The position numbers and the translations under genes are program-made. Shown here one piece after another: positions 9,044 to 63,819 of a stretch of DNA of 64,000 nucleotides. The notes under the pieces were generated by a model, which saw nothing but the letters and a program-made list of their open reading frames with translations, did not search any database and was not told the origin of the DNA. Position 1 is the first letter of the stretch, and every line of letters begins with the position of its first letter. The stretch is from Perna viridis (Eukaryota): positions 25,606,001 through 25,670,000 of the forward strand of contig CM074512.1 in assembly GCA_037379345.1 (NCBI GenBank), given 5' to 3'.

Positions 9044-9532
9044 ATTCTAATGGAGAGAATCATTTGACTACTTTAGTGACAAGTTGATCGTTCGCTGTGG
9101 GAGAAATCAGCACTACTAGGAGTACTTTATGAAATCTTCACTGTTCTTCAACTGCCGTGTATCAATAGTAATGATATATCCTAAAGTGCCACGAGTTATG
9201 TTTAATCAATAATTTTCTCCGAACTCTGATTACATTTTACGGAGCAGACATCTATAGACTCCTGGTCGGCACAACGATATGATTTTTTATGGTAATCATA
9301 ACAGCAGCTTTATTAAAAACCAGTTATATCAAAGAGATTCCAAACTTTGTCTGGGATTAGAATGATTTTTCATTACATTTAAATTCCATACTGCTTGTTC
9401 CACTGGAGATAAAGAAGAGGGAGAATCTGATGGAATATTTGATTGATAGGAAGTCTTAAAAGGAACCGGAATTATTGTCTGTTTTACTTAGATGGAACAT
9501 GTATTAAGAAATAGCAGTGAGTCATACTTGTA
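9044..9532 (+). other. Spliced 5' UTR part of the first coding exon of neurexin, with several uORFs
   Basis: Strong acceptor ttatttttt cag| ending 9043, then ~490 nt to the signal-peptide ATG at 9533. uATGs at 9050, 9129, 9279, 9289, 9362, 9430, 9492, 9499. Confidence 0.6.
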
Positions 9533-19228: not shown

Positions 19229-19920
19229 GTATGAAAATCATATTTAATCATCAAACGTTAATGACAAGAGTGAAAGCAAAGCTGAGCTGTCGGATTATGA
19301 TCATTGTATAGATGAGATAATTGTATAATCAGATTCCTGTATATATAGCTTTTTGCAACGAAGTAGAAAATCTGGAAGCCAGTTCTGTTTTATTGATTTG
19401 TGCAAATCACCTTAAAATGGAACAATGGAAATCTATTTTATATGTACCCTACTGGTATAATAAATGTCAATGAAATGGAATATTTTTGCTCATCTTTGAA
19501 GTTTTAATGTCTATTTTATCAAGACACTGTGTTTTTTGTTGATTATTGAGATGCAGTAGTAAACTTTTACTCAGTTATTTGGCACCATTTCAGACTTTCT
19601 CTTGGAATCTTTTTGACAGGAGTTCTCACTTGATTTGATAATATACACTTAATAAAACAAGTTTACTTCATGTAAAATTTGGGTACAGAAGTCCTTTGAT
19701 GTGTTCATTAAAAGACAGATGTGATTTTTTTAGTGAGGAGATCAGGTTTTTGTAAACATGAGTTGAATCAGAACTCATAACTTAAGTTGAAAAAAACCTA
19801 AAGTGCTAAGTTGCCAAGCTCTAATTTAAACTGTTCCAGGTACACATTTTTGTTTTTTTTTTTCTTGCCTCTAATATTCATTTATCTTCCTTGCTGGATT
19901 CATCAGAATCATTATTATAT

Positions 19921-20073
19921 TTCGTTGACAATGCTGACAGTGTTGCAGTTTTCGTTGACAATGCTGACAGTGTTGCAGTTTTCGTTGACAATGCTGACAG
20001 TGTTGCAGTTTTCGTTGACAATGCTGACAGTGTTGCAGTTTTCGTTGACAATGCTGACAGTGTTGCAGTTTTC
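19921..20073. repeat. Minisatellite, 30-bp unit, 5 perfect copies
   Basis: ttcgttgacaatgctgacagtgttgcagtt. Confidence 0.97.
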
Positions 20074-20758
20074 AATGCAGATGAATTTCTTCTTGTCAAA
20101 TTAAATATCATGGTAGTTAATGACATCATTGATTTAATGCTCTGTCATATAAGACCAGAATGGAGATTAAAATCTAACAGGCTTGATTTAGTATCAGACT
20201 TATTGGTTTATTTATGTAGCACATGAAAGTAAAAATATACCATATTGCTTCTATTCTTTCTTTGCTAACACATTGTCATATGAAGGCAAAATTGTTTCTA
20301 GTTACAGTGAACCTTCTATTTTATTGTGGTATACCTGTAACATTCATGGGTGAATTTTTTTTATAGTATTCGATTTGGCTTGTGCAGATTTTCTGACAAA
20401 AAAAATACAGAAATGGTGAAAATAAAGACATTGAGGATACAGTGAATCACCATGTACCTGCATTAAGTTTGTTTTTAAAAAATGGGCAAAATGGTCCCAT
20501 AGCTCCCAAGATATTATGTTAAAATTATAACCATTAGCAGTTTAATATACTAATTAAGGGATGAGATGATGTAATTTCTTCAGTAGGACTTCTGCCATTG
20601 AGACTTAGGATTGAACATTTAAGTAATTTAATCTTTCTTACTTTTCGTGTTTTTGATTGGATTCTTGATTTCAAGATTCCATAGGAAATATGTACCCACC
20701 AATAATGAATGTACTGCTGTGAATGATACTGATTATAGTATACTCTCTTTTAACACAG

Positions 20759-20919
20759 GTGATCAGACTGACCACATTATGATATCAGTTAGAAATGGTG
20801 CTGTGTCAGTAAGGGTAAACCTAGGGTCAGGAGCCTGGGATCAACAGCTACCATCCAATGACTATAGGTTTGATGACAACCAATGGCATCATGTGCTAGT
20901 CAGGAGAACATCTAGAGAG
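20759..20919 (+). CDS. NRXN: Neurexin exon 3: LNS2 (GDQTDHIMIS...VNLGSG...FDDNQWHHVLVRRTSRE)
   Basis: acacag| acceptor, |gtataa donor at phase 0, the position equivalent to vertebrate SS2. Confidence 0.94.
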
Positions 20920-22049
20920 GTATAAATCATCTCTTCATTACTATGATACTTTTTCTTTGTTTATACTGCACCTATTTATTTACTTGCATTGATGATCCTG
21001 CCATGCCTATTACCTATAACATTACAAAATTAACTTTATCTCTTTTGCACTTGCTTTATGGATTTTCCATTGTTGGAGTAATGTAAAAAGTCACTTGGGT
21101 AGAATTATGATAGCATTAACATTGAGAATTTTCCTGGTCCTTAGAAAAACTGAAAGACATTTTATTCTTTCATCACTTGATACTTGTATATTTTAATGCC
21201 ACTGCCTGAAGGCATTTATACACTAACTTTTGCTGCTGTCTGTATGTAGTGTCCCCAATAAATTTTCATCACAGAAGTGTCAGCAACATTTCATGGGAAT
21301 TATTTTAAATTTGGTAAGCAGCCTCATTTTTATGGACTTTTTTAATTGTTTGTGAACCCACCTCCTGTTTGCCAGTATGATTCAATTTTTTTTAAGGTAA
21401 CTAATCCAAGACATCTCTGCAACCCTTTATGGGAATTTAAATTCAGGTTTGCAAGTTCATTTTAGTTGGGTGTAGTGTGTGTGAACCTTTTGGCTAGATT
21501 GGACATCTACTTCTTGTTCGGCTGAACAAATTTTTGCTTATTTTTTAAAGTAAATGTAAATTTTCAGAACAAAATTTTGACAACCCTTCGTTGGAATTAT
21601 TAGAATTTGTGTGTGCCTCTTGAGCTTAACATGTTGTACTGTGTGTAAACTTTTTTGGCTCGGTCAATTTCCTGTTTGCTTGAACATTTATTTTTTTTTT
21701 AGCTTTTTAGGGTTTCTTTACTTATGGTCACAAAAATCCCAGCAATTCTTCTTGACAAAGATTTGAAATTGGTATGCAGCTTCATCTTGATGAATTGTTT
21801 TTGGACTCCCTGTTTGCAGAAACAATTTGTTGCTTTTGTAGTATGTCTGGTCCAAAAACCTTTTTTGAGACTTCTGTCTTATTGATTTTATATTTTGTTC
21901 CTGTTTATTGTTTCTATTAATTTAAGGTATGTCTTGGTATTTATGTCCTATGGATTCATCTCATCTGTATGAATCATGGCCACTTTACTCAGAATTCTGT
22001 TGTTCCAAATGGCTTCCTATTTACCTTTTGTTATTTCTTGAAAATTCTT

Positions 22050-23025
22050 GTTCACTTATTTCTTGTTCTACCTAGATTCCTGTTCACTCTTCATTGTTTA
22101 TTTTCCATTCTATTTAGCCCTTAGTTATTTCATCCTGATCTTAATAGTTTGTAATGAAAATAAAATGGTTTCTGTTCATCTTTTGCTGTATATCTCTAAG
22201 ATTCCAGCTCACCCTTTGTTGTTTCATCCAGATTCTTGATCACCTTTAGTTGTTTATGCTTCATTCTATTTATTCCTTAGTTGTTTCACTCTGATCTTAA
22301 TTGTTTGTAATGAAAATGAAATGGTTTCTGTTCATCTTTTGTTGTATATCTCTAAGATTCCTGTTCACCCTTTGTTGTTTCATCCAGATTTCTGTTCACT
22401 CTTTGTTGTGTCATCCAGATTCTTTTTCAACCTTTGTTGTTTTATCCAGATTCCTTCTCACTCTTTGTTGTTTCATCCAGATTCCTGCTCACCCTTTGTT
22501 GTTTTATCCAGATTTCTGTTCACCTGTTGTTGTTTTATCTCTAAGATTCCTGCTCACTCTTTGTTGTGTCATTCAGATTCCTTCTCACTCTTTGTTGTTT
22601 TGTCCAGATACCTGCTCACCCTTTGTTGTTTTATCCAGATTCCTGCTCACCCTTTGTTGTTTTGTCCAGATACCTGCTCACCCTTTGTTGTTTTATCCAG
22701 ATTCCTGCTCACCCTTTGTTGTTTTATCCAGATACCTGCTCACCCTTTGTTGTTTTATCCAGATTCTTGCTCACCCTTTGTTGTTTTGTCCAGATACCTG
22801 CTCACCCTCTGTTGTTTTATCCAGATTCCTGCTCACCCTTTGTTGTTTCATCCAGATACCTGCTCACCCTCTGTTGTTTTATCCAGATTCCTTCTCACTC
22901 TTTGTTGTTTTGTCCAGATACCTGCTCCCCCTTTGTTGTTTCATCCAGATTCCTTCTCACTTTTTGTTGTTTCATCAGATTCTTGCTCACCCTATCTTGT
23001 TTCACGCATATTCCTGTTCACCCAA
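22050..23025. repeat. Pyrimidine-rich minisatellite, 31-bp unit, more than 20 copies, degenerate at the 5' end
   Basis: ccagattcctgctcaccctttgttgttttat. Confidence 0.95.
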
Positions 23026-24467
23026 CTTTGTTTATCTCCAATTCCTTCCAGCCCTTGAGTGTTTTGCCATAATCTGCAATGGCTGAAAACAAAGTTTTGA
23101 TATGACTGCAAACCATTTATCAAATGACAATGTTTTTTTTTGAAATTATAACAATTAAATTTAGTGTAATGCATGAGTTTTAAACTATTGATGAAGGTTT
23201 GATGCTCTCAAAGAAAGTCAGTTTTTTTAGTTTTGACAGAAAGGGTTGGAATCAATTAGAAATTACCCAAAACCCTGGCTTTAAATATTTGATTTCATTA
23301 GAAATTGATTTTCTGTATGAAGAATGCTGTATCACTTTCTCATGATGGTTTCAATTTCAGGAATTTGATTGAAAATCAGATAAATGGGCTGTAATGTCCA
23401 TTGAATTGATAGGTTTCAGTAATCTGAGATGACATGACCTGAAACAGAATCAAACATAGTATGAGATGCATTTGGAAAGTAGTTCATATTTTGTAAATAT
23501 TTTTATGCCATCACTTTGAGTTGGGGTATAAAGTGATGGGAGTGTCCTTCCTTCCTTCTGTTTGTACTTCTTCCTTCCATTACTCAAAGGGGTACCCATC
23601 TCTTATCTATTACTCTCCCAATACCACTGATGATAAATTAATGAATTTATTGCTTATTACCATTGTGCACGTCATATTTTAGATTTTGATCCGAAACAAT
23701 GTTGAGGTCTAAAGGTACATGTTGGAAGGGGTATCAAGTTGGTGAGCAATGCTCACAGTTTTTTTCTAGTTTTTGAAAGTAAGGTGAGGTAAAAAATTTC
23801 AGTTATAAAATTTGCAACCATTGTATCCACTTCTTACTTTAAAAAGTGTTATATTGAATTAGCTGCACATATGTAGCTCTGAAAATCACCCCTTTTTTAC
23901 CTGCATTGTCCAAGGTGAAAGTCTAGAAGTATGGTCTCTCAGTCTGTCCATGTGTCGATGTGTAACACAATGATACATCAGGTCCTCAATAACTATTGAA
24001 CAGAAATTCGTGAAACTTGGTATGTAGCATATGTAGTTTAGTTTTTCTTTATCAGGAAATTTTGATTCTCTAATTTTTATGGGAGTTATACCCTTTTGAA
24101 CTTAGAAATTTACTGTAAACCATCATGTATCAGCTTGTAATTGTAACTCCTCTGAAACTACAAAAAAATTCATTACAAATAGCAGAAAAAATCAAATCAA
24201 AAATATTCTGGCCATTCTAAAATACCTATGCCAGGCCAAGCCAGCCCTGTCTAATGGGACCAGTCAATTTTTAGAGTATGCTGTGAAAAACTTAAATTGT
24301 AGTATTTTACTTTTTATTCTATTTCAAGTCGACTATAGATTGGGAACTCCAAGCCAAAAACAAAACTGAGACCAGGCTGTGTTTTTTTTAAAGTATGTCC
24401 TTTTCAAGAATACTTCTAGACTTACACGGCTTGCTTCAATTTGTAATGAACAGCCTGTTGAAGCTTT

Positions 24468-24687
24468 TGACAGGATTATCTGACATATGACGGGATTATC
24501 TGACATATGACAGGATTATCTGGCATATGACAGGATTATCTGACATATGACAGGATTGTCTGACATATGATAGGATTGTCTGACATATGACAGGATTATC
24601 TGGCATATGACAGGATTATCTGACATATGACAGGATTATCTGACATATGACAAGATTATCTGGCATATGACAGGATTATCTGACATA
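24468..24687. repeat. Minisatellite, 20-bp unit, ~11 copies
   Basis: tgacaggattatctgacata. Confidence 0.96.
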
Positions 24688-25316
24688 AACCCTGATAAAT
24701 TTACTAATAAATTTATTTCTACATTGACTATTGCTATGCTTCTTTCTTATTAAGTACATTTTTTTGGCCCTAGGTTGATATACATTATATATGATTGTGA
24801 CAATATCTTGCCTTTAGCTATCCTTATTCTACTGGAGCCAAATTCAATACAGATCAACCCATGCTAATGAGTACTTTTTCTAAGCTATAGATGAATCCTC
24901 AGTGCAGATTATGTTGCATGTATTACCAAATAGGCATGGTATTGTCTTATTTATCTACATGCTTTATTCATGTATTAGATTTTATTCAGTATTTTAGAGA
25001 TTTAATTATAGATGTCGATCATCAATCTTAGTTAGGCATACATTCAAATGAAACAACAATAAAAATATACGTGTTGTTTTGTTTGTGTCTAGATTTCTGT
25101 GATATTATACAGAAACTGTTTTTGTTTTTTTTACATATTCAGTAATTACAAGTATTATTTCAAAACACATTTGCAATATTAGAAGAAAGATAGCTTTTGG
25201 TGGATTACTAATGTGTCCCGGAGTTAGAAAATGTGCAAGATTATTATCTCCTCTTAACTAACTACACCAATTTGGAGTCTTTGCTATATTGTATATTAAT
25301 TTGATCTGATTTGTTA

Positions 25317-25526
25317 TACTGTGAAAGTACTTTAATTCATGGATACCAATTTTCGGGGATTAGGAAAGAAACACAAGTTCCTGGATTCTTGAATTTCTGG
25401 TTTTGAAGTTTTAAGTATACGCATCAATGGAAATCTCCTTTTGGTTGGGAACCAAATTTCGTGGTTTGACCTACCCATGGAAACCATGGAAATTGGTACC
25501 CCTTAAACAATGGTATTTTCACAGTG
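25317..25526 (-). mobile_element. ~205-bp MITE (TIR tactgtgaaagta), inverted relative to the other copies
   Basis: Its start equals the reverse complement of the end of the 26221 copy; TIRs at both ends. Confidence 0.8.
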
Positions 25527-25914
25527 ATGTTATGCCAACAGATTATACAATTTATTTGGAATAAAAATTTAAAAAATTAAGAAACTTTTTAAAAAAATTT
25601 CTATAATTAGTAGTATTGGCAGATTTTTTTGTCTTGATGTTAATGTCATAAGGATATATAATAGCAATGAAAACCAAATGAGAATTAGCTGATAGTGCAA
25701 AATTTATATTAGAATTTTTCATTGATGTCAGTTTATTCTATACAATGTTCAGTATTATGCAGTGTTATCATACTGCACCCAGCTTTTTTATTTAGATATT
25801 GAATGCTTACTTAATGTACAAGTTATGATATTGCTTGCATGTTCCAGCAGGGCACCTTTCAATCTAAATTTGTGCACTTTTATAGTAGTTTTTGGTGTTT
25901 TTCTTTGCCACCAG

Positions 25915-25941
25915 CTCACTCCAGGGAATGCTAGAGCAGTA
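25915..25941 (+). CDS. NRXN: Predicted 27-nt alternatively spliced microexon (LTPGNARAV) in LNS2, SS2-equivalent
   Basis: gtttttctttgccaccag| acceptor, consensus |gtaagt donor, phase 0-0, no stop codon; TGCATG motifs on both sides. Confidence 0.72.
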
Positions 25942-26220
25942 GTAAGTAGGCATGACCCATCACTGCACGCTTAGTTTAGTTATCCTGCATGAATCTTTAT
26001 TCCCAACAATAGATCTCAGCGTGATACTCAGCTGTAAGGAATTGTCAGTGTTAAAGGTCATTAAGTCTTGAGGTACACAAAAGGAAATCACACAAAAACA
26101 AAAAACAAAAAACGGATGAATTGCTGTTTTGTTAATATCATTCTAATCATTTTTATGGAAAAAAAGACAACCTCCATATAAATTTTACTGATGTCTCTAA
26201 AATAAGTCATGTGGAAACTA

Positions 26221-26424
26221 TACTGTGAAAGTGTTATTGTTCGCTGGCACCAATTTTCGTGGTTTCCATGGGAAGGCCAAACCACTAAATTTAGTTCCAA
26301 ACGAAAAAGAGATTTGAATTGAAGTGTATACTGAAAAATCTTGCAATCACAAATTATAGGATCCACGAACTTGTGTTTCTTCCCTTATCCATGAAAATTG
26401 GTATCTATAAGTACTTTCAGAGTA
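26221..26424 (+). mobile_element. ~205-bp MITE (TIR tactgtgaaagt)
   Basis: tactgtgaaagt...agtactttcagagta; shares the internal accaattttcgtgg motif with the other copies. Confidence 0.8.
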
Positions 26425-26429
26425 TTCCA

Positions 26430-27222
26430 TTTTAGCTCACTTGGCTGAAGGCCATGTGAGCTATTGCCATCACTGGCTGTTCATCGTCTTCTGTCATTGT
26501 CATTGTCCTTTAATAATTTTTAATAATCTTCTTCTCAGAAACTACTGAGCAGAATTATATGAAACTTTGCACAGATGTTCCTTGGAGTATCTTGCTCAAA
26601 AGTTCTATCTAAAGTGATGAGATCTATATATGGTCAAATTTTCATTTTAATCTGTTAAGCCATGTTGGACTTATTGCCCTTTTTGATGTTGTTTTTTTTG
26701 CTATTTTTAATGTTATTTCTTTCAAAAATCTTCTGACAACCAATAGGAGCCAAACTTGGTATGGATGTTCCTTGGGGTATCCTGCATAGAACTGATGTGG
26801 AGATTTTTTATCCATCAAAAACATGGCTACTGTTACTAAAAAAGGAACATAGGGGTCAGACTATAGTTTTTTTGCATATTGTATCTCCAAAACTGTTTCG
26901 TTTAGCCAAATTCCTACAATTGCTGAAATGATCCTTTTTGTAAGGACAACAAAAATCTGCATGGATTAAAGTTGTCAGGTGACTGCTTGTAAGAGTTATT
27001 GCCCTTGAAAATGAAAAATGACTTTTTTTTCAGTTTTTAGCCAATATCTTGAAAACTATGATAGATAGAAAGAAACTTTGAATTGTGGAAATGATCCTTA
27101 TGATAAGTCCTACCAAAGTCTTTTTGAGTCAAAATTGTTAGAGAACTTCTTTTTAAATTTATTGCCATTGAAAGACAAAATTTAACCAGGTGAACGATTC
27201 AGGCTCCTGGGAGCCTCTTGTT
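26430..27222 (+). mobile_element. Helentron-associated non-autonomous element (HINE/DINE-1-like)
   Basis: 5' ttttagctcac..gtgagct inverted repeat, GTC-like microsatellite, 3' caggtgaacga plus hairpin aggctc/gagcct, T-rich flanks. Confidence 0.7.
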
Positions 27223-27957
27223 TTTGAACGCCTTCAAGTTTTCACAAATATATATCGGCATGTTAATTAGGTACTTAGATTTCTGAAGATATTTATTTTG
27301 GCCAGTAATATACTGATAATAGGTAATTGATAAAAGACATGTTTAAGGTGTGAATCAATAAGATTCTGGCTAAATAAAAGTTCAGTAAGTATAAGTGAAC
27401 GATTTATTGTTTGAAATTCAGTTATTTCAATTTGATAAATATCTGATTCTTTAAATAATGAAGTTTCATTTCAAGATATAATGTTGCTATATTTTTTTTT
27501 ATATTAAAAACTTTGATATTCAGCACGTTTAGTAGTATATGTTGTTTGTGAAATGCTTTTTGGCCTGTGATTCTGGTACTATGGATTTATGACACCTTTA
27601 TTAAAGACAACTATCAAATGTGATATGTATTGATGTCCCTTGTAAGATACAAAGTCAACAAGGAAATATTTCTTGAAAAGATAACCAAAGCAAACCAGTA
27701 TGAATAAAGATTATTTTCTTATTTCTTATTTTTATTGTAAATTACTCATAAATATGACCATTCTCTATAACAATAATGTTTAACATCATGAAACACCTTT
27801 GAACAGATCATTTGTAACATGCCTTTGACTAAAAAGTCAGCATCCAACAAAGTATGTTGTCATTTGCATGTGTTTTTGCCCACTGTTGAATTTCTAATTT
27901 AGCTTTCCAAATTTCTATAGGCTAAGTAAACATTATTTTGCTTCTTGTTCAAAGAAT

Positions 27958-28307
27958 TATTACACCCCTACTCAAACAGTGGCTAGTATATTGGAATCAC
28001 CTTGTCTGTCTGTCATTCTGTCCATCCGAATTTTCAAATTTCACATGTGGCTTTTATGTAGATAGGACATACAATACCTTATATCAGCTTCCTGTTTTGT
28101 GGGACTTGGCCATTTTTCACTATATGAAATGATAGAGACATTTTTCTTAACCAAAATTTCAGCTTCCAATAAATTTGATGTAAGGCTTTATACAAATGGG
28201 GTATATGTTATATGCAATTTTAGTTAATGTTCAATATCAACTTCCTGTAAGAGTGGAGGTTAGAGTGGAGGTATGCCTAGCATGACAATGTGTCCAACTT
28301 CATGTTT
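27958..28307 (+). mobile_element. Degenerate HINE-like element; a related copy spans 42598-46577
   Basis: Shared 5' tatattggaatcaccttgtc plus (tctg/tcca) microsatellite, and shared 3' caacttcatgtt. Confidence 0.5.
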
Positions 28308-28644
28308 CCAGCTATTGTAAAACCACCTGCTACACAAAGAAATTGATCTCAAAAACTTCATGTTAATAGTATGTCTTCCTGTGGAACACTCATACATGTA
28401 TGTTGTTCTATTTACTATTAAATAAATAAGTTTTATTGAGTGAAAGGCATGTAGGATTAACATACAAAAAGTCTTGGTTTATGATATATATATTTAACAT
28501 AAAATCTTTATTCATATTGTTAGATTTGATGTGGAACATAAAGAACCCTTCTAGGACAATATAATGTTAGATCTAACAAAAAAAAAAGTCTTGTTCAATA
28601 TAGGATAAACTTAAAGAAATCTCAGTCGATATGTTGTTAGGTTT

Positions 28645-29088
28645 GACATAAAGAAATCATGGTTGATATAATGTTAGGATTAACATAAAGAAATCATGGT
28701 TGATATGATGTTAGGTTTAACATAAAGAAATCATGGTTGATATAATGTTAGGATTAACATAAAGAAATCATGGTTGATATAATGTTAGGATTAACATAAA
28801 GAAATCATGGTTGACATGTTGTTAGGATTAACATAAAGAAATCATGGTTGATATGATGTTAGGTTTAACATAAAGAAATCATGGTTGATATAATGTTAGG
28901 ATTAACATAAAGAAATCATGGTTGATATAATGTTAGGTTAACATAAAGAAATCATGGTTGATATGTTGTTAGGTTTAACATAAAGAAATCATGGTTGATA
29001 TAATGTTAGGTTAACATAAAGAAATCATGGTTGATATAATGTTAGGATTAACATAAAGAAATCATGGTTGATATAATGTTAGGTTTAA
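28645..29088. repeat. Minisatellite, 37-bp unit, ~12 copies, with degenerate units from ~28450
   Basis: taacataaagaaatcatggttgatataatgttaggat. Confidence 0.96.
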
Positions 29089-30478
29089 TACTAAGTAGTC
29101 TTGTTTTTGAAAACTTGGAAGCATTTATGTTAAAGCCTTAGAATTGTACAATTATTTTATTCTTGCATTCTCAGTGTAATAAGTATCAATAGAAAAAGGT
29201 AGAACCCTGGTAATTTCACTCTAAAGGCAGTTATAAAAAGCAATATCTTGCTTCAGGCAATTTGCTCATAAACAACCAAAAATTACACCATCAAACTAAA
29301 TAACATAGCTATTGATCAGTTGACAAGAAGCAAAACACATAAAATGGCTAACTGCATCAACTCTTGAGGAAATATGATTTTTGAATCATCAGGAATTGCA
29401 TAACAAGTGATGGTTTGTGTTAGATAATAAAATGGATTTCTGACATGAGTTAATGCTTTGTTGTTGATTCCATCAGTTTTTATGTTGTCATATTTGTCTG
29501 TCAAGATGTTCTGATCAATGTATAAGTCGTTTCATTGTCATTTTTTCTTTTTTATCCCTATATAGTTCATGCAACATGTAAGCATTTATGGCCACTGTTC
29601 ACTTTAATATCAAAACTGCCCTGAATATTGGAATTTAGATAGGAGATAACTAATGTACTGATGGTGGAGTTCATTATTTTACTATTTTACTGTAAATCAG
29701 TGCTGTGATAAACTGTTGATATACACTATTCAAACAGGCTTTGTAGATCTTTATGAAGTGGTATCCATTCTTAACAAACTTGTATTTTCTCTTACTGTGA
29801 GTTAATCATGGGTGTTTTATTCTATTTTCCCTATTTAATCGTACCAGATATGTTACTGAGTCATTCTCAATTGAACATTTGACCAGGGACAAATGTTGGA
29901 TCATATTATGTGTACAATAGCAGGGTAATTTGAAAAATGCAAACTAGTGGTGGAATACATCTTTTGTGATGAGCAACCCTCCTTGACAATGTCTGTCACA
30001 AAGGCAGATGATCAAAATCTAATATTACATGTTCTTTAATTAAGCTCCACAGTAGTGAGTAAATCTTAAAACCCATGTACTTTACACTTGGTATGATACT
30101 ACATTTAATTCAAAAGGCTCAACCGATGTGATGCACATTTGCTTGACTAAACACCCATGGTAAGTTCTCACTGATTGAATTGTAGAATTGCTTGTACTGG
30201 TATTGAAATGAAGAACACAATTTCTGTTGATATAATTGCATGAACAAATAGCCTCTTAACACCATGGGAATTTGAAATGTAGTAACTTTTTCTTTTGTTA
30301 AATATTTTAGATTGCACCCAAAATTTGAAAATTAATTTTTCACTTTCATAACATAATGAATAGAACATGATATGAAAGTGAATGTTATCTTTGTGGTTTT
30401 GGAAAGAGAATCAATGAATATAATCATTATCTGCAGAGAAATTTTTTTTTTACAGTTTTATCATGTTTTATTTTACAG

Positions 30479-30631
30479 ATCCATGTTGAAGTAGATGGTT
30501 CTCACAGATTAGATGGTACCACCCTAGGAGCATACTCAATCCTAAACATGAATACATTGTATGTTGGTGGAGGACCTAACCCACTCTATAACAACAGGCC
30601 AACTGTTAACTTCAAAGGCTGTATGAAAAAG
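30479..30631 (+). CDS. NRXN: Neurexin exon 4: LNS2 end (IHVEVDG...LYVGGGP...NFKGCMKK)
   Basis: ttttacag| and |gtgagt, phase 0-0, 153 nt. Absent from the ORF track; translated by hand. Confidence 0.94.
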
Positions 30632-30659
30632 GTGAGTAATGAGATGTACGATGATATAT

Positions 30660-31500
30660 TATTCCTGTTCCAAAGATCTAGCAGCAATCTCATGCTGTGG
30701 TAAGGTTTTCCTCTTCAGAAGACCTAGCATTGATCTCCAGCTGTGGTAGAGTATTCATTGTCTGAAGATGTAACAGTGATGTCTGGCAGTGGTAGAGTTT
30801 TCTACTCCTGAAGATCCAGCAGTGGTCTGTGTTTGAACAGTAATCTCTAGCAGTTGTAGAGTTTTATTTATATGGAGATATAGAAGTGATGTCTTGTAGT
30901 GGTATAGTCTTTCTATTCTGAAGATACAGGAATCTGCAGCTGTGATACGATTTCCTTCTCCTGAAAATCTAGCAGCGATCACTAGCTTTGCTATGATTTT
31001 CTTGACTTTATGATCTGGCAGTGATCTCTAGCTGTAGTAGAGTTTTTTTTATATGAAGATCTAGCAATGATCTGTTGCTGTGGTATGTACTTCTCCTGAA
31101 GATCTAGCAATGATCTGTTGCTGTGGTATGTACTTCTCCTGAAGATCTAGCAATGATCTGTTGCTGTGGTATGTTCTTGTCCTGAAAATCTAGCAGTGAT
31201 TGCTAGGTGTGGCAGGATTTCCCTCTTCCTATGATCTAGCAGTGATTTGTTGATATGGTAGGGTTTCTTTCTCCTGATAATCTAGCAGTGATTTTTTGCT
31301 ATGGTAGGGTCTCTTTCTCCTGATAATCTAGCATTGATCTGTTGCTATGGTAGGGTCTCTTTCTCCTAATAATCTAGCAGTGATCTCGAGCAGTGGTAGA
31401 GTTTTCCTCTTCCAAAGAATTGGCAGTGACCTCTAGTGGTGATAAGGTTTCTCCCTGTAGTAATGGTATATCATTCCTTCTCATTCTGAGGATTTAGATG
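30660..31500. repeat. Degenerate 43-44-bp minisatellite just downstream of exon 4
   Basis: Recurring cctgaagatctagcaRtgatct..gctgtggta. Confidence 0.85.
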
Positions 31501-61854: not shown

Positions 61855-63428
61855 GTACTTAAATATCAACCGTGACCGACCTCATCAAAAATCCAAACAA
61901 CTTGACACTAAAACCAGAAGGTAATAAAGCCATGTAAAGACGACTGCATTCAAACAACTCTTTATTAATCAGAGCTTAAAGAATGCCTTTATGGTTTTCA
62001 TGAAAAGGTACTGCATGGCTCCATAGTACAGGTTTGTCTGAACATTCCATAGCCAATGAAAACTGACGGTCAAAATGCTAAGTCTTGACTTGTGGAGTGT
62101 AACAGCAGATACTGTACAGTTATTATTATTATCAAGCTTGCATGGAATGTCCATTCTTGCTCCTACTGTTCAGGGTTTGACCTTTGCAGCAGTACAAAAC
62201 ATTCTGTCATTCTGTTACACTTGTTTTCGTAAAATAAAATCCTCAGCTTCTGCAAATCACAGGCTATTGAAACTTTATATATAGCTTCATATAGGTATAC
62301 ATTATCATGGGTTGCTTTTTGTACTTGTATGACATCTACTTCTTGTTTGCTGAAAAATTTGAATTTTTCTTATACAGTGGTAATATACAAAATTTTTGTC
62401 ACATTTTTCTTGTCTTCTAAAAATCGCCGATTGTTGATATACTGTACTTAGCTATGATGTTTTATCATTGGATATGTTTTGCTACTTTTATGACATCTAC
62501 TTCCTGTTTGCCGAAAATATTTGAATTTTACTTAAATTTCAATTACCTCAATTTTTTTTTATACAAGTTTTAGCCTTTGTATATATTAGTATGGCATTGT
62601 CATCCTCATCTGTTTTGGTCTTCAATAAGCTCTTTGATGTTTTTGTCTGTGATAGTGTAAGTAGAAGGTGATGGGTTTAATGAAAAAAAATCCATGTAGT
62701 TCAGTACCACAAAAGAACCAAGTTTTGGATTGATTCTGTGGGTTATGGTCTGGTTAGGAATAAGGGTCCAAAATCATGCATTTTATAAAACTTAGTAGAT
62801 ATTGTATTTTTCTTTTTTCTTTATTACAACGAAATTCATACAAAAATTAAATATCAGCATGCAGGGAAATGAAACCAGAATTGTGTAGGTTGGGCATGCA
62901 TTATTTCAACTGGAAAATTGTAAGAAGCATGAAGGGTATGTGGAGAATTCAAACTTTTTGAATGGTACATTATTCCGACCCCAACCCAACAGATCCAAAT
63001 AAAAGAAAGGAATTGGATAGCATCACATGAAATTCAGACTAATGGCTCACCAATCATAAAGATAAAAAAAATAATCTAAACAATAAATAATTATGAAATT
63101 TATTTGACAAAGTCGTCCTCTAAATTTCCATAGGTCAATTATTTTGTTTTCACAAGTGTCTTGCAGTTGTTCAAGTTAATTTGTATAGATGTTTTTGCCC
63201 TCAGCCCATTAATTGCTTTCATATAGGTGTCAATTTGAATGTCCACAGAGATCAAGTTCCATTATTAGAAACTCAATAGATGAGTACACTCAGCAGAACT
63301 GGTAAAGCTATTCCTGTCATCATGGTCTGAATGTTCTTACTCCAAACAATAATTACGAAATGCTAGGATTATCATCTTTAAATCGTTTATTTATAGTACT
63401 ATGTATCTTTTTTATGTCTTTTTAACAG

Positions 63429-63819
63429 TACAATACAAGATGGTTTAAACAGAATTTGTACAGATGGTCCTGATTGTGAAAAAGATGGTGGTGTCATAAA
63501 TGCTTTGGAGACCACCAAATCTACATCTGTTTTAACAACTGCGAAAAAAGAATCACAGGGCATGCCAGACCCTGGTGATGAAAAGAAAAGGCTTGCATTA
63601 TATATTGGTATAGGGGTAGGAGTACTTTTTACTCTCATCATTTTAATCATAGCCTTATATAAATTTCGTAGTCGGGATGAAGGAACTTATAAAGTAGATG
63701 AGAGTAAAAATTTTGCCTATTTAGAATCTAAAAATGTCCACCATGGGAATGGAGCCATAATAGGTGCATCAAACATTAAACCTGGCAAGAAAAAAGATGT
63801 AAAGGAGTGGTATGTATGA
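63429..63819 (+). CDS. NRXN: Neurexin last exon: juxtamembrane region, TM helix, 4.1-binding motif, PDZ ligand
   Basis: tttttaacag| phase 2; LALYIGIGVGVLFTLIILIIALY TM; YKFRSRDEGTYKVDESKN; KKKDVKEWYV*. Confidence 0.97.

Follow-up and report, generated by a model that had tools for sequence, protein, structure and literature searches.

A probable 27-nt alternative cassette exon at the splice site 2 position of alpha-neurexin in Perna viridis

Splice site 2 (SS2) inserts of vertebrate neurexins adjoin the ligand surface of the LNS2 domain. At this junction vertebrate proteins read RNLRQ|VTISVDG without an insert, RNLRQ|HSGIGHAM|VTISVDG with the 8-residue insert (SS2A), or carry a 15-residue form (SS2AB), the inserts being encoded by 24 or 45 nt. 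In vertebrates, the only animals for which such an effect is known, the insert prevents dystroglycan from binding and makes neurexophilin bind more strongly (PMC6856630, PMC12665717). Neurexophilins are absent in invertebrates (PMC6856630), so that the neurexophilin switch cannot apply in molluscs. A 2025 review describes extensive neurexin splicing as exclusive to vertebrates. In the limited set of literature that we searched, no paper described an SS2 in invertebrates or the splicing of neurexin in bivalves.

Regulated alternative exons are typically under RNA-level constraint, and a (U)GCAUG downstream of an exon normally enhances its inclusion via Rbfox. A UGC adjoining the acceptor characterizes microexons that depend on the eMIC domain, and the sets of these microexons are reported to be almost entirely rewired between phyla (PMC8797185).

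The window analyzed here, a stretch of 64,000 nt from contig CM074512.1 of the Perna viridis assembly GCA_037379345.1, contains a complete alpha-neurexin gene on its plus strand. Its product has six LNS domains with EGF repeats, preceded by a signal peptide (near 9530) and followed by a transmembrane segment with a neurexin-type tail (63397-63816). LNS2 is split by a phase-0 intron of 9.5 kb, which separates the constitutive exon 3 (20759-20919, plus strand), ending with ...VLVRRTSRE in phase 0 and followed by gtataa, from the constitutive exon 4 (30479-30632, plus strand), starting with IHVEVDG. Exon 3 gives a Laminin_G_2 match (E 1.3e-08), and exon 4 also matches a Laminin_G model. In the introns on either side of exon 3, tandem-repeat-like open frames with periodic peptides were seen in a six-frame listing at 19825-20100 and 22240-23080.

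Inside the 9.5-kb intron lies a 27-nt segment at 25915-25941, stop-free in frame 0 and encoding LTPGNARAV, which we judge, with good confidence, to be the P. viridis orthologue of a conserved alternative cassette exon of alpha-neurexin. It is directly preceded by gtttttctttgccaccag and directly followed by gtaagt on the plus strand, on which the following elements also lie. The 3' splice region (25890-25914) is composed of a pyrimidine tract, a TGC at 25906-25908, and the AG at 25913-25914, while the 5' splice site GTAAGT occupies 25942-25947. Downstream, a GCATG of the Rbfox core type is found at +9 (25950-25954), then a 12-mer, CACTGCACGCTT, at 25961-25972 that fits no motif we recognize, and then ATCCTGCATG at 25982-25991, which includes a TGCATG at 25986-25991; one more TGCATG lies upstream of the exon, at 25836-25841. 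The region 25840-26010 occurs once in the 723-Mb genome, and a repeat origin of the microexon was rejected, the abundant repeat of this neighborhood sitting at 25302-25500, off the exon.

By comparing exon 3 with the LNS domains of Nrxn1-alpha (3qcw), we found that its best match is LNS2 (residues 278 to 327; 33 bits, against at most 13 bits for the other LNS domains), and the alignment stops at the R of RNLRQ. The P. viridis junction RRTSRE|insert|IHVEVDG corresponds to vertebrate RNLRQ|HSGIGHAM|VTISVDG. Because exon 3 matches LNS2 best and ends at RNLRQ, and because the vertebrate inserts are placed at the same junction, the site is the exact SS2 equivalent. The insertion point, the phase-0 intron, and a short in-frame alternative insert are therefore common to the two systems; they differ in length (27 nt against 24 or 45 nt), and no similarity was detectable between LTPGNARAV and HSGIGHAM(VNKLHxx). 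The original prediction had placed a microexon at just this junction, with an insert unrelated to HSGIGHAM, and both statements held, as did its account of the exon anatomy (27 nt, reading frame, LTPGNARAV, TGC, AG, GTAAGT, and the exon borders 20919 and 30479) and of the motif positions (TGCATG at 25836 and 25986, GCATG at 25950).

Inserts at the same junction were collected by searching with exon 3 singly and then using database proteins as queries. In Mytilus, the insert is LTTGNAKAV (M. edulis X1/X7, M. californianus X1/X4/X5, M. galloprovincialis, M. coruscus, and M. trossulus), and models without it include M. edulis X2/X8 and M. californianus X3, among others. Compared with P. viridis, the insert of Mytilus, the closest relatives (M. 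edulis X1, XP_071159700; M. trossulus, XP_063429308), has the same junction, length, and phase and is alternative within Mytilus species, although it comes from another genus in which the flanking exons are only about 74% identical and differs by T for P and K for R. Oysters carry LTVGNAKYI (Magallana gigas X7) or LTIGNAKYI (Crassostrea virginica, Saccostrea, and Ostrea), and the insert is missing from six oyster Logan transcript clusters. Scallops have LTRQNG[LY]TG, found also in one Logan transcript, and Mizuhopecten X3 is without it; gastropods have LTRD[KRE]GVCx, included in Haliotis asinina X4 and missing from X3 and X5. Further inserts were LAKDRGLFV in Octopus and LTRQHGFLD in the nemertean Lineus. 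Isoforms with and without the insert thus coexist in mussels, oysters, scallops, and Haliotis, and from mussels through gastropods to Octopus the exon appears to retain its 27 nt and its phase 0.

Almost every one of these protostome inserts has nine residues, beginning with L/I-T/S and often carrying a G at position 4 to 6, while in the C-terminal half they have diverged; the bivalve inserts seen lack the Cys of gastropod and arthropod inserts. The P. viridis exon has the same attributes, namely 27 nt, phase 0-0, AG/GT borders, an L/I-T/S start, and a position at the exon 3-exon 4 junction, and it shares LTxGN with oysters and Pinctada. In arthropods, nearly every isoform listed has I[ST]xxT[SR]FC[RH] at the protein level at this junction, and the sea spider Nymphon has no insert. 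Because every listed insect isoform carries it, the insect insert is perhaps constitutive. The arthropod segment resembles the gastropod LTRDKGVCY, with G/S-hydrophobic-C in common, which suggests that an ancestral alternative exon may have turned constitutive in insects. The insert family is protostome-wide rather than a one-off mollusc invention, and the SS2 splice site is not confined to vertebrates.

Genomic loci of Mytilus trossulus, Saccostrea, and Pinctada imbricata were then compared with that of P. viridis. The M. trossulus orthologous exon (22928-22954 of its locus) is identical to the microexon at 25 of 27 nt, 7 of 9 residues, and 9 of 9 third codon positions; both differences, P for T and R for K, are non-synonymous. 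For the neighboring coding exons, nucleotide identity is 73.6% in exon 3 (27 of 53 third positions identical) and 74.5% in exon 4 (24 of 51). When 20600-30800 of the window was searched by blastn against the orthologous 8.8 kb of M. trossulus, only two matches were returned, exon 4 and the microexon with its flanks (25901-25975; 82.5% over 80 nt). The microexon and about 50 nt of flank form the only conserved island in an intron that is otherwise unalignable. Within this island, M. trossulus retains the acceptor block tttgcc..cag with UGC at -9, the donor GTAAGTA, GCATG at the identical position of +9, CACTGCACGCTT, and the 10-mer ATCCTGCATG, the last shifted by a 10-nt indel; (U)GCAUG is kept in both genera at +9 and at about +45/+55. 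The upstream TGCATG (25836-25841) is not conserved at that position and is probably incidental.

In Saccostrea, the orthologous exon (L001:13006-13032) is followed by GTAAGTA, by a GCATGTGCATG cluster at +41 to +51, and by a further (U)GCAUG at +112; no UGC was found near its acceptor, and the tttgcc..cag block is not conserved. In Pinctada imbricata (GCA_033119305.1), we found an unannotated orthologous exon, LTAGNGVVD, at L002:21555-21581 in the arrangement ag|27 nt|gtaagta, with no UGC near the acceptor, no GCAUG within 180 nt downstream, and no conserved tttgcc..cag. GTAAGTA is accordingly the donor in 4 of the 4 bivalve loci compared. Taken together, these comparisons indicate strong purifying selection on the exon and the adjoining intronic flanks, and point to a cassette under selection at both the RNA and the protein level. 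The complete identity of third positions argues for RNA-level constraint beyond that of the protein. On the other side, the insert peptide itself is loosely constrained, because its C-terminal half varies widely among bivalves. The original prediction had looked to an island of conservation in the orthologous bivalve intron for support, and such an island is present. It had also called the exon hidden, which in the wider sense was mistaken, since Mytilus, oysters, scallops, gastropods, and Octopus already have orthologous 27-nt exons among their RefSeq/GenBank isoforms; the exon is new for the P. viridis genome and is not new as such, public models of close relatives having it.

As to how the cassette may be controlled, inclusion would be regulated and most likely neuron-enriched, with the downstream (U)GCAUG copies acting as an intronic enhancer of the Rbfox type and the UGC beside the 3' splice site possibly helping in the manner of the Srrm234 eMIC. 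The likeness of the P. viridis sequence to neural microexons of the eMIC/Rbfox kind lies in the length of 27 nt, the UGC just upstream of AG, a (U)GCAUG at most 60 nt downstream, a neuronal adhesion gene as host, and a position in a surface loop of a protein-interaction domain, though the motifs are not present in all bivalves. By the eMIC sequence criterion (a length of at most 27 to 30 nt and a UGC close to the 3' splice site), P. viridis has both attributes, and the UGC is also in Mytilus. As regards the Rbfox criterion, a conserved (U)GCAUG at most about 100 nt downstream, the motif is present in P. viridis, Mytilus, and Saccostrea and absent in Pinctada. The UGC and (U)GCAUG would fit Rbfox/eMIC control within mytilids and not in bivalves generally. 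A search of the P. viridis genome for PF15230 (Srrm234-eMIC) and PF12414 (Rbfox) returned 0 matches, and the controls equally returned 0. We hold neuron-enriched inclusion assisted by Rbfox/eMIC to be almost, but not quite, an evenly balanced proposition.

It is also quite possible, if somewhat doubtful, that the segment is a conserved alternative exon standing outside the Rbfox/eMIC neural programme, being governed by other factors or not neuron-specific, with the motifs kept for other reasons. The absence of UGC in Saccostrea and Pinctada and of GCAUG within 180 nt downstream in Pinctada speaks for this reading, as do the loss of the upstream TGCATG even in Mytilus, the conserved 12-mer at 25961-25972 that fits no motif we recognize, and the reported almost complete rewiring of eMIC programmes between phyla (PMC8797185). 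On the other hand, GCATG at +9 and ATCCTGCATG are kept in two genera of mytilids with introns that cannot otherwise be aligned, Saccostrea has its GCATGTGCATG cluster at +41 to +51, and neurexin is a neuronal gene, all of which tells against it.

We then turned to RNA from P. viridis. Exon 3 is present in 20 Logan runs of the organism, and the spliced RNA contigs of two runs stop exactly at 20919. Two sets of contigs and two runs of raw RNA-seq reads (sampled to about 19%) were compared with 20600-26200; in these four data sets there were 0 joints of 20919 to 25915 and zero depth over 25836-26022, at a raw depth over exon 3 of only 1 to 3 reads, from unlabeled tissue, and with a 27-nt piece near the limit of the aligner. 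For these reasons of depth, tissue, and length, the missing inclusion joint, while lending inclusion no support, is not evidence of absence. Inside the intron, low and reproducible RNA coverage with many variant letters was seen in several runs at 21348-21721, 23592-23778, and 23966-24152, and probably derives from repeat-derived reads or a retained intron.

An inverted repeat pair of about 190 nt, 83 to 84% complementary, brackets the microexon at 25302-25500 and 26246-26439, about 415 nt upstream and about 305 nt downstream of it. The repeat family of this pair is highly abundant in RNA, with depth in the thousands and many variant letters, and blastn did not find the pair in the M. trossulus intron. 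If the two copies paired in the pre-mRNA, the exon could be looped out.

This lineage-specific pair, together with the four RNA data sets lacking junction and coverage, gives some ground for regarding the segment as an orthologous exon that has fallen into disuse in P. viridis, a relic always or nearly always skipped. We regard a relic as improbable: nothing has been lost from the open frame, the AG acceptor, the GTAAGTA donor, or any of the nine third positions, a decaying exon would not remain 93% identical beside coding exons that are 74% identical, and the RNA test has very low power.

Identity of every third position is the sort of RNA-level constraint that might also be shown by an intronic element that is conserved and non-coding, such as an enhancer or an RNA structure, and has only the look of an exon; however, such constraint is typical for regulated alternative exons, the orthologous segment occurs in mRNA models and transcript-derived proteins of several molluscs, and neither its 27 nt nor its phase 0 appears to change between mussels, gastropods, and Octopus, which makes a non-coding element very improbable.

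The splice-like signals alone are better than chance only moderately. In the 9.5-kb intron there are 248 open in-frame AG...GT pairs of 3 to 51 nt, 12 of which have a GTRAG donor and 3 a good pyrimidine tract as well. For strict decoys, defined by a GTAAGT donor, at least 75% pyrimidine, and an open in-frame length of 3 to 51 nt, 0.07 are expected per dinucleotide-shuffled intron, and under looser criteria 3 candidates were observed against 0.75 expected. Of all 200-nt windows, 0.19% contain at least two TGCATG. Besides the microexon, a GTRAG donor and a good pyrimidine tract also accompany two in-frame decoys of this intron, 23770-23778 (9 nt, FLK) and 29566-29577 (12 nt, FMQH), and neither has a blastn match in the M. 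trossulus intron. When the 5301 open 27-mers of the intron were ranked by similarity to non-Mytilus bivalve inserts, the microexon came first (score 26; next, 18). A gastropod-like orthologue of the LTRDKGVCY type elsewhere in the intron was also sought and rejected, the best-scoring 27-mers being without splice sites. A chance pseudo-exon, formed where AG and GT happen to enclose an open frame within a long AT-rich intron, is plausible from signals alone, given 248 such combinations and two other decoys, and is effectively refuted by conservation, with the insert resembling those of Mytilus, oysters, and Pinctada, the first rank among 5301, and the conserved island. The rank and the 25/27 identity to M. 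trossulus are decisive for a real exon.

For the conserved cassette exon, inclusion would add the nine residues LTPGNARAV between ...RRTSRE and IHVEVDG... of LNS2. The added residues would lie at the SS2 junction, adjoining the face at which the domain binds ligands and Ca2+, where they may switch LNS2 ligand binding as the vertebrate SS2 insert does for dystroglycan. Because invertebrates are without neurexophilins, a switch of the dystroglycan type or for another ligand would be the likeliest role.

At the SS2 junction, mussels, oysters, scallops, gastropods, a cephalopod, and a nemertean all appear to have a 27-nt alternative exon, and arthropods have a matching 9-residue segment; in mytilids, conservation of this exon and its flanks exceeds that of the neighboring coding exons. 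Since the limited literature that we searched describes no invertebrate SS2 and extensive neurexin splicing has been called vertebrate-exclusive, the cross-phylum pattern merits the attention of specialists. Homology to vertebrate SS2 and a recurrent hotspot for new exons both stand as readings of these sequences. One far-reaching possibility, which we consider unlikely, is that SS2 is ancestral to bilaterians: a cassette in the protostome-deuterostome ancestor would have been kept at 27 nt in protostomes and remodelled to 24/45 nt in vertebrates, under Rbfox and/or Srrm234 eMIC control throughout, and would have gated an ancient LNS2 ligand such as dystroglycan. If that were true, the textbook view of neurexin alternative splicing as a vertebrate invention would be overturned, and the exon would be among the very few neural microexons common to different phyla. 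Two questions can be tested in tractable molluscs: whether SS2 has been conserved since deep in evolution or is a place where new exons arise repeatedly, and what LNS2 splicing regulates in animals without neurexophilins.

For the P. viridis window itself, the finding is mainly a point of annotation, and the exon belongs in the gene model. A smaller observation concerns Pinctada, in which the deposited model KAK3092743.1 divides the gene into two parts and omits, besides the 27-nt exon, exon 4 as well (VELWVDG..., about 25568-25729).
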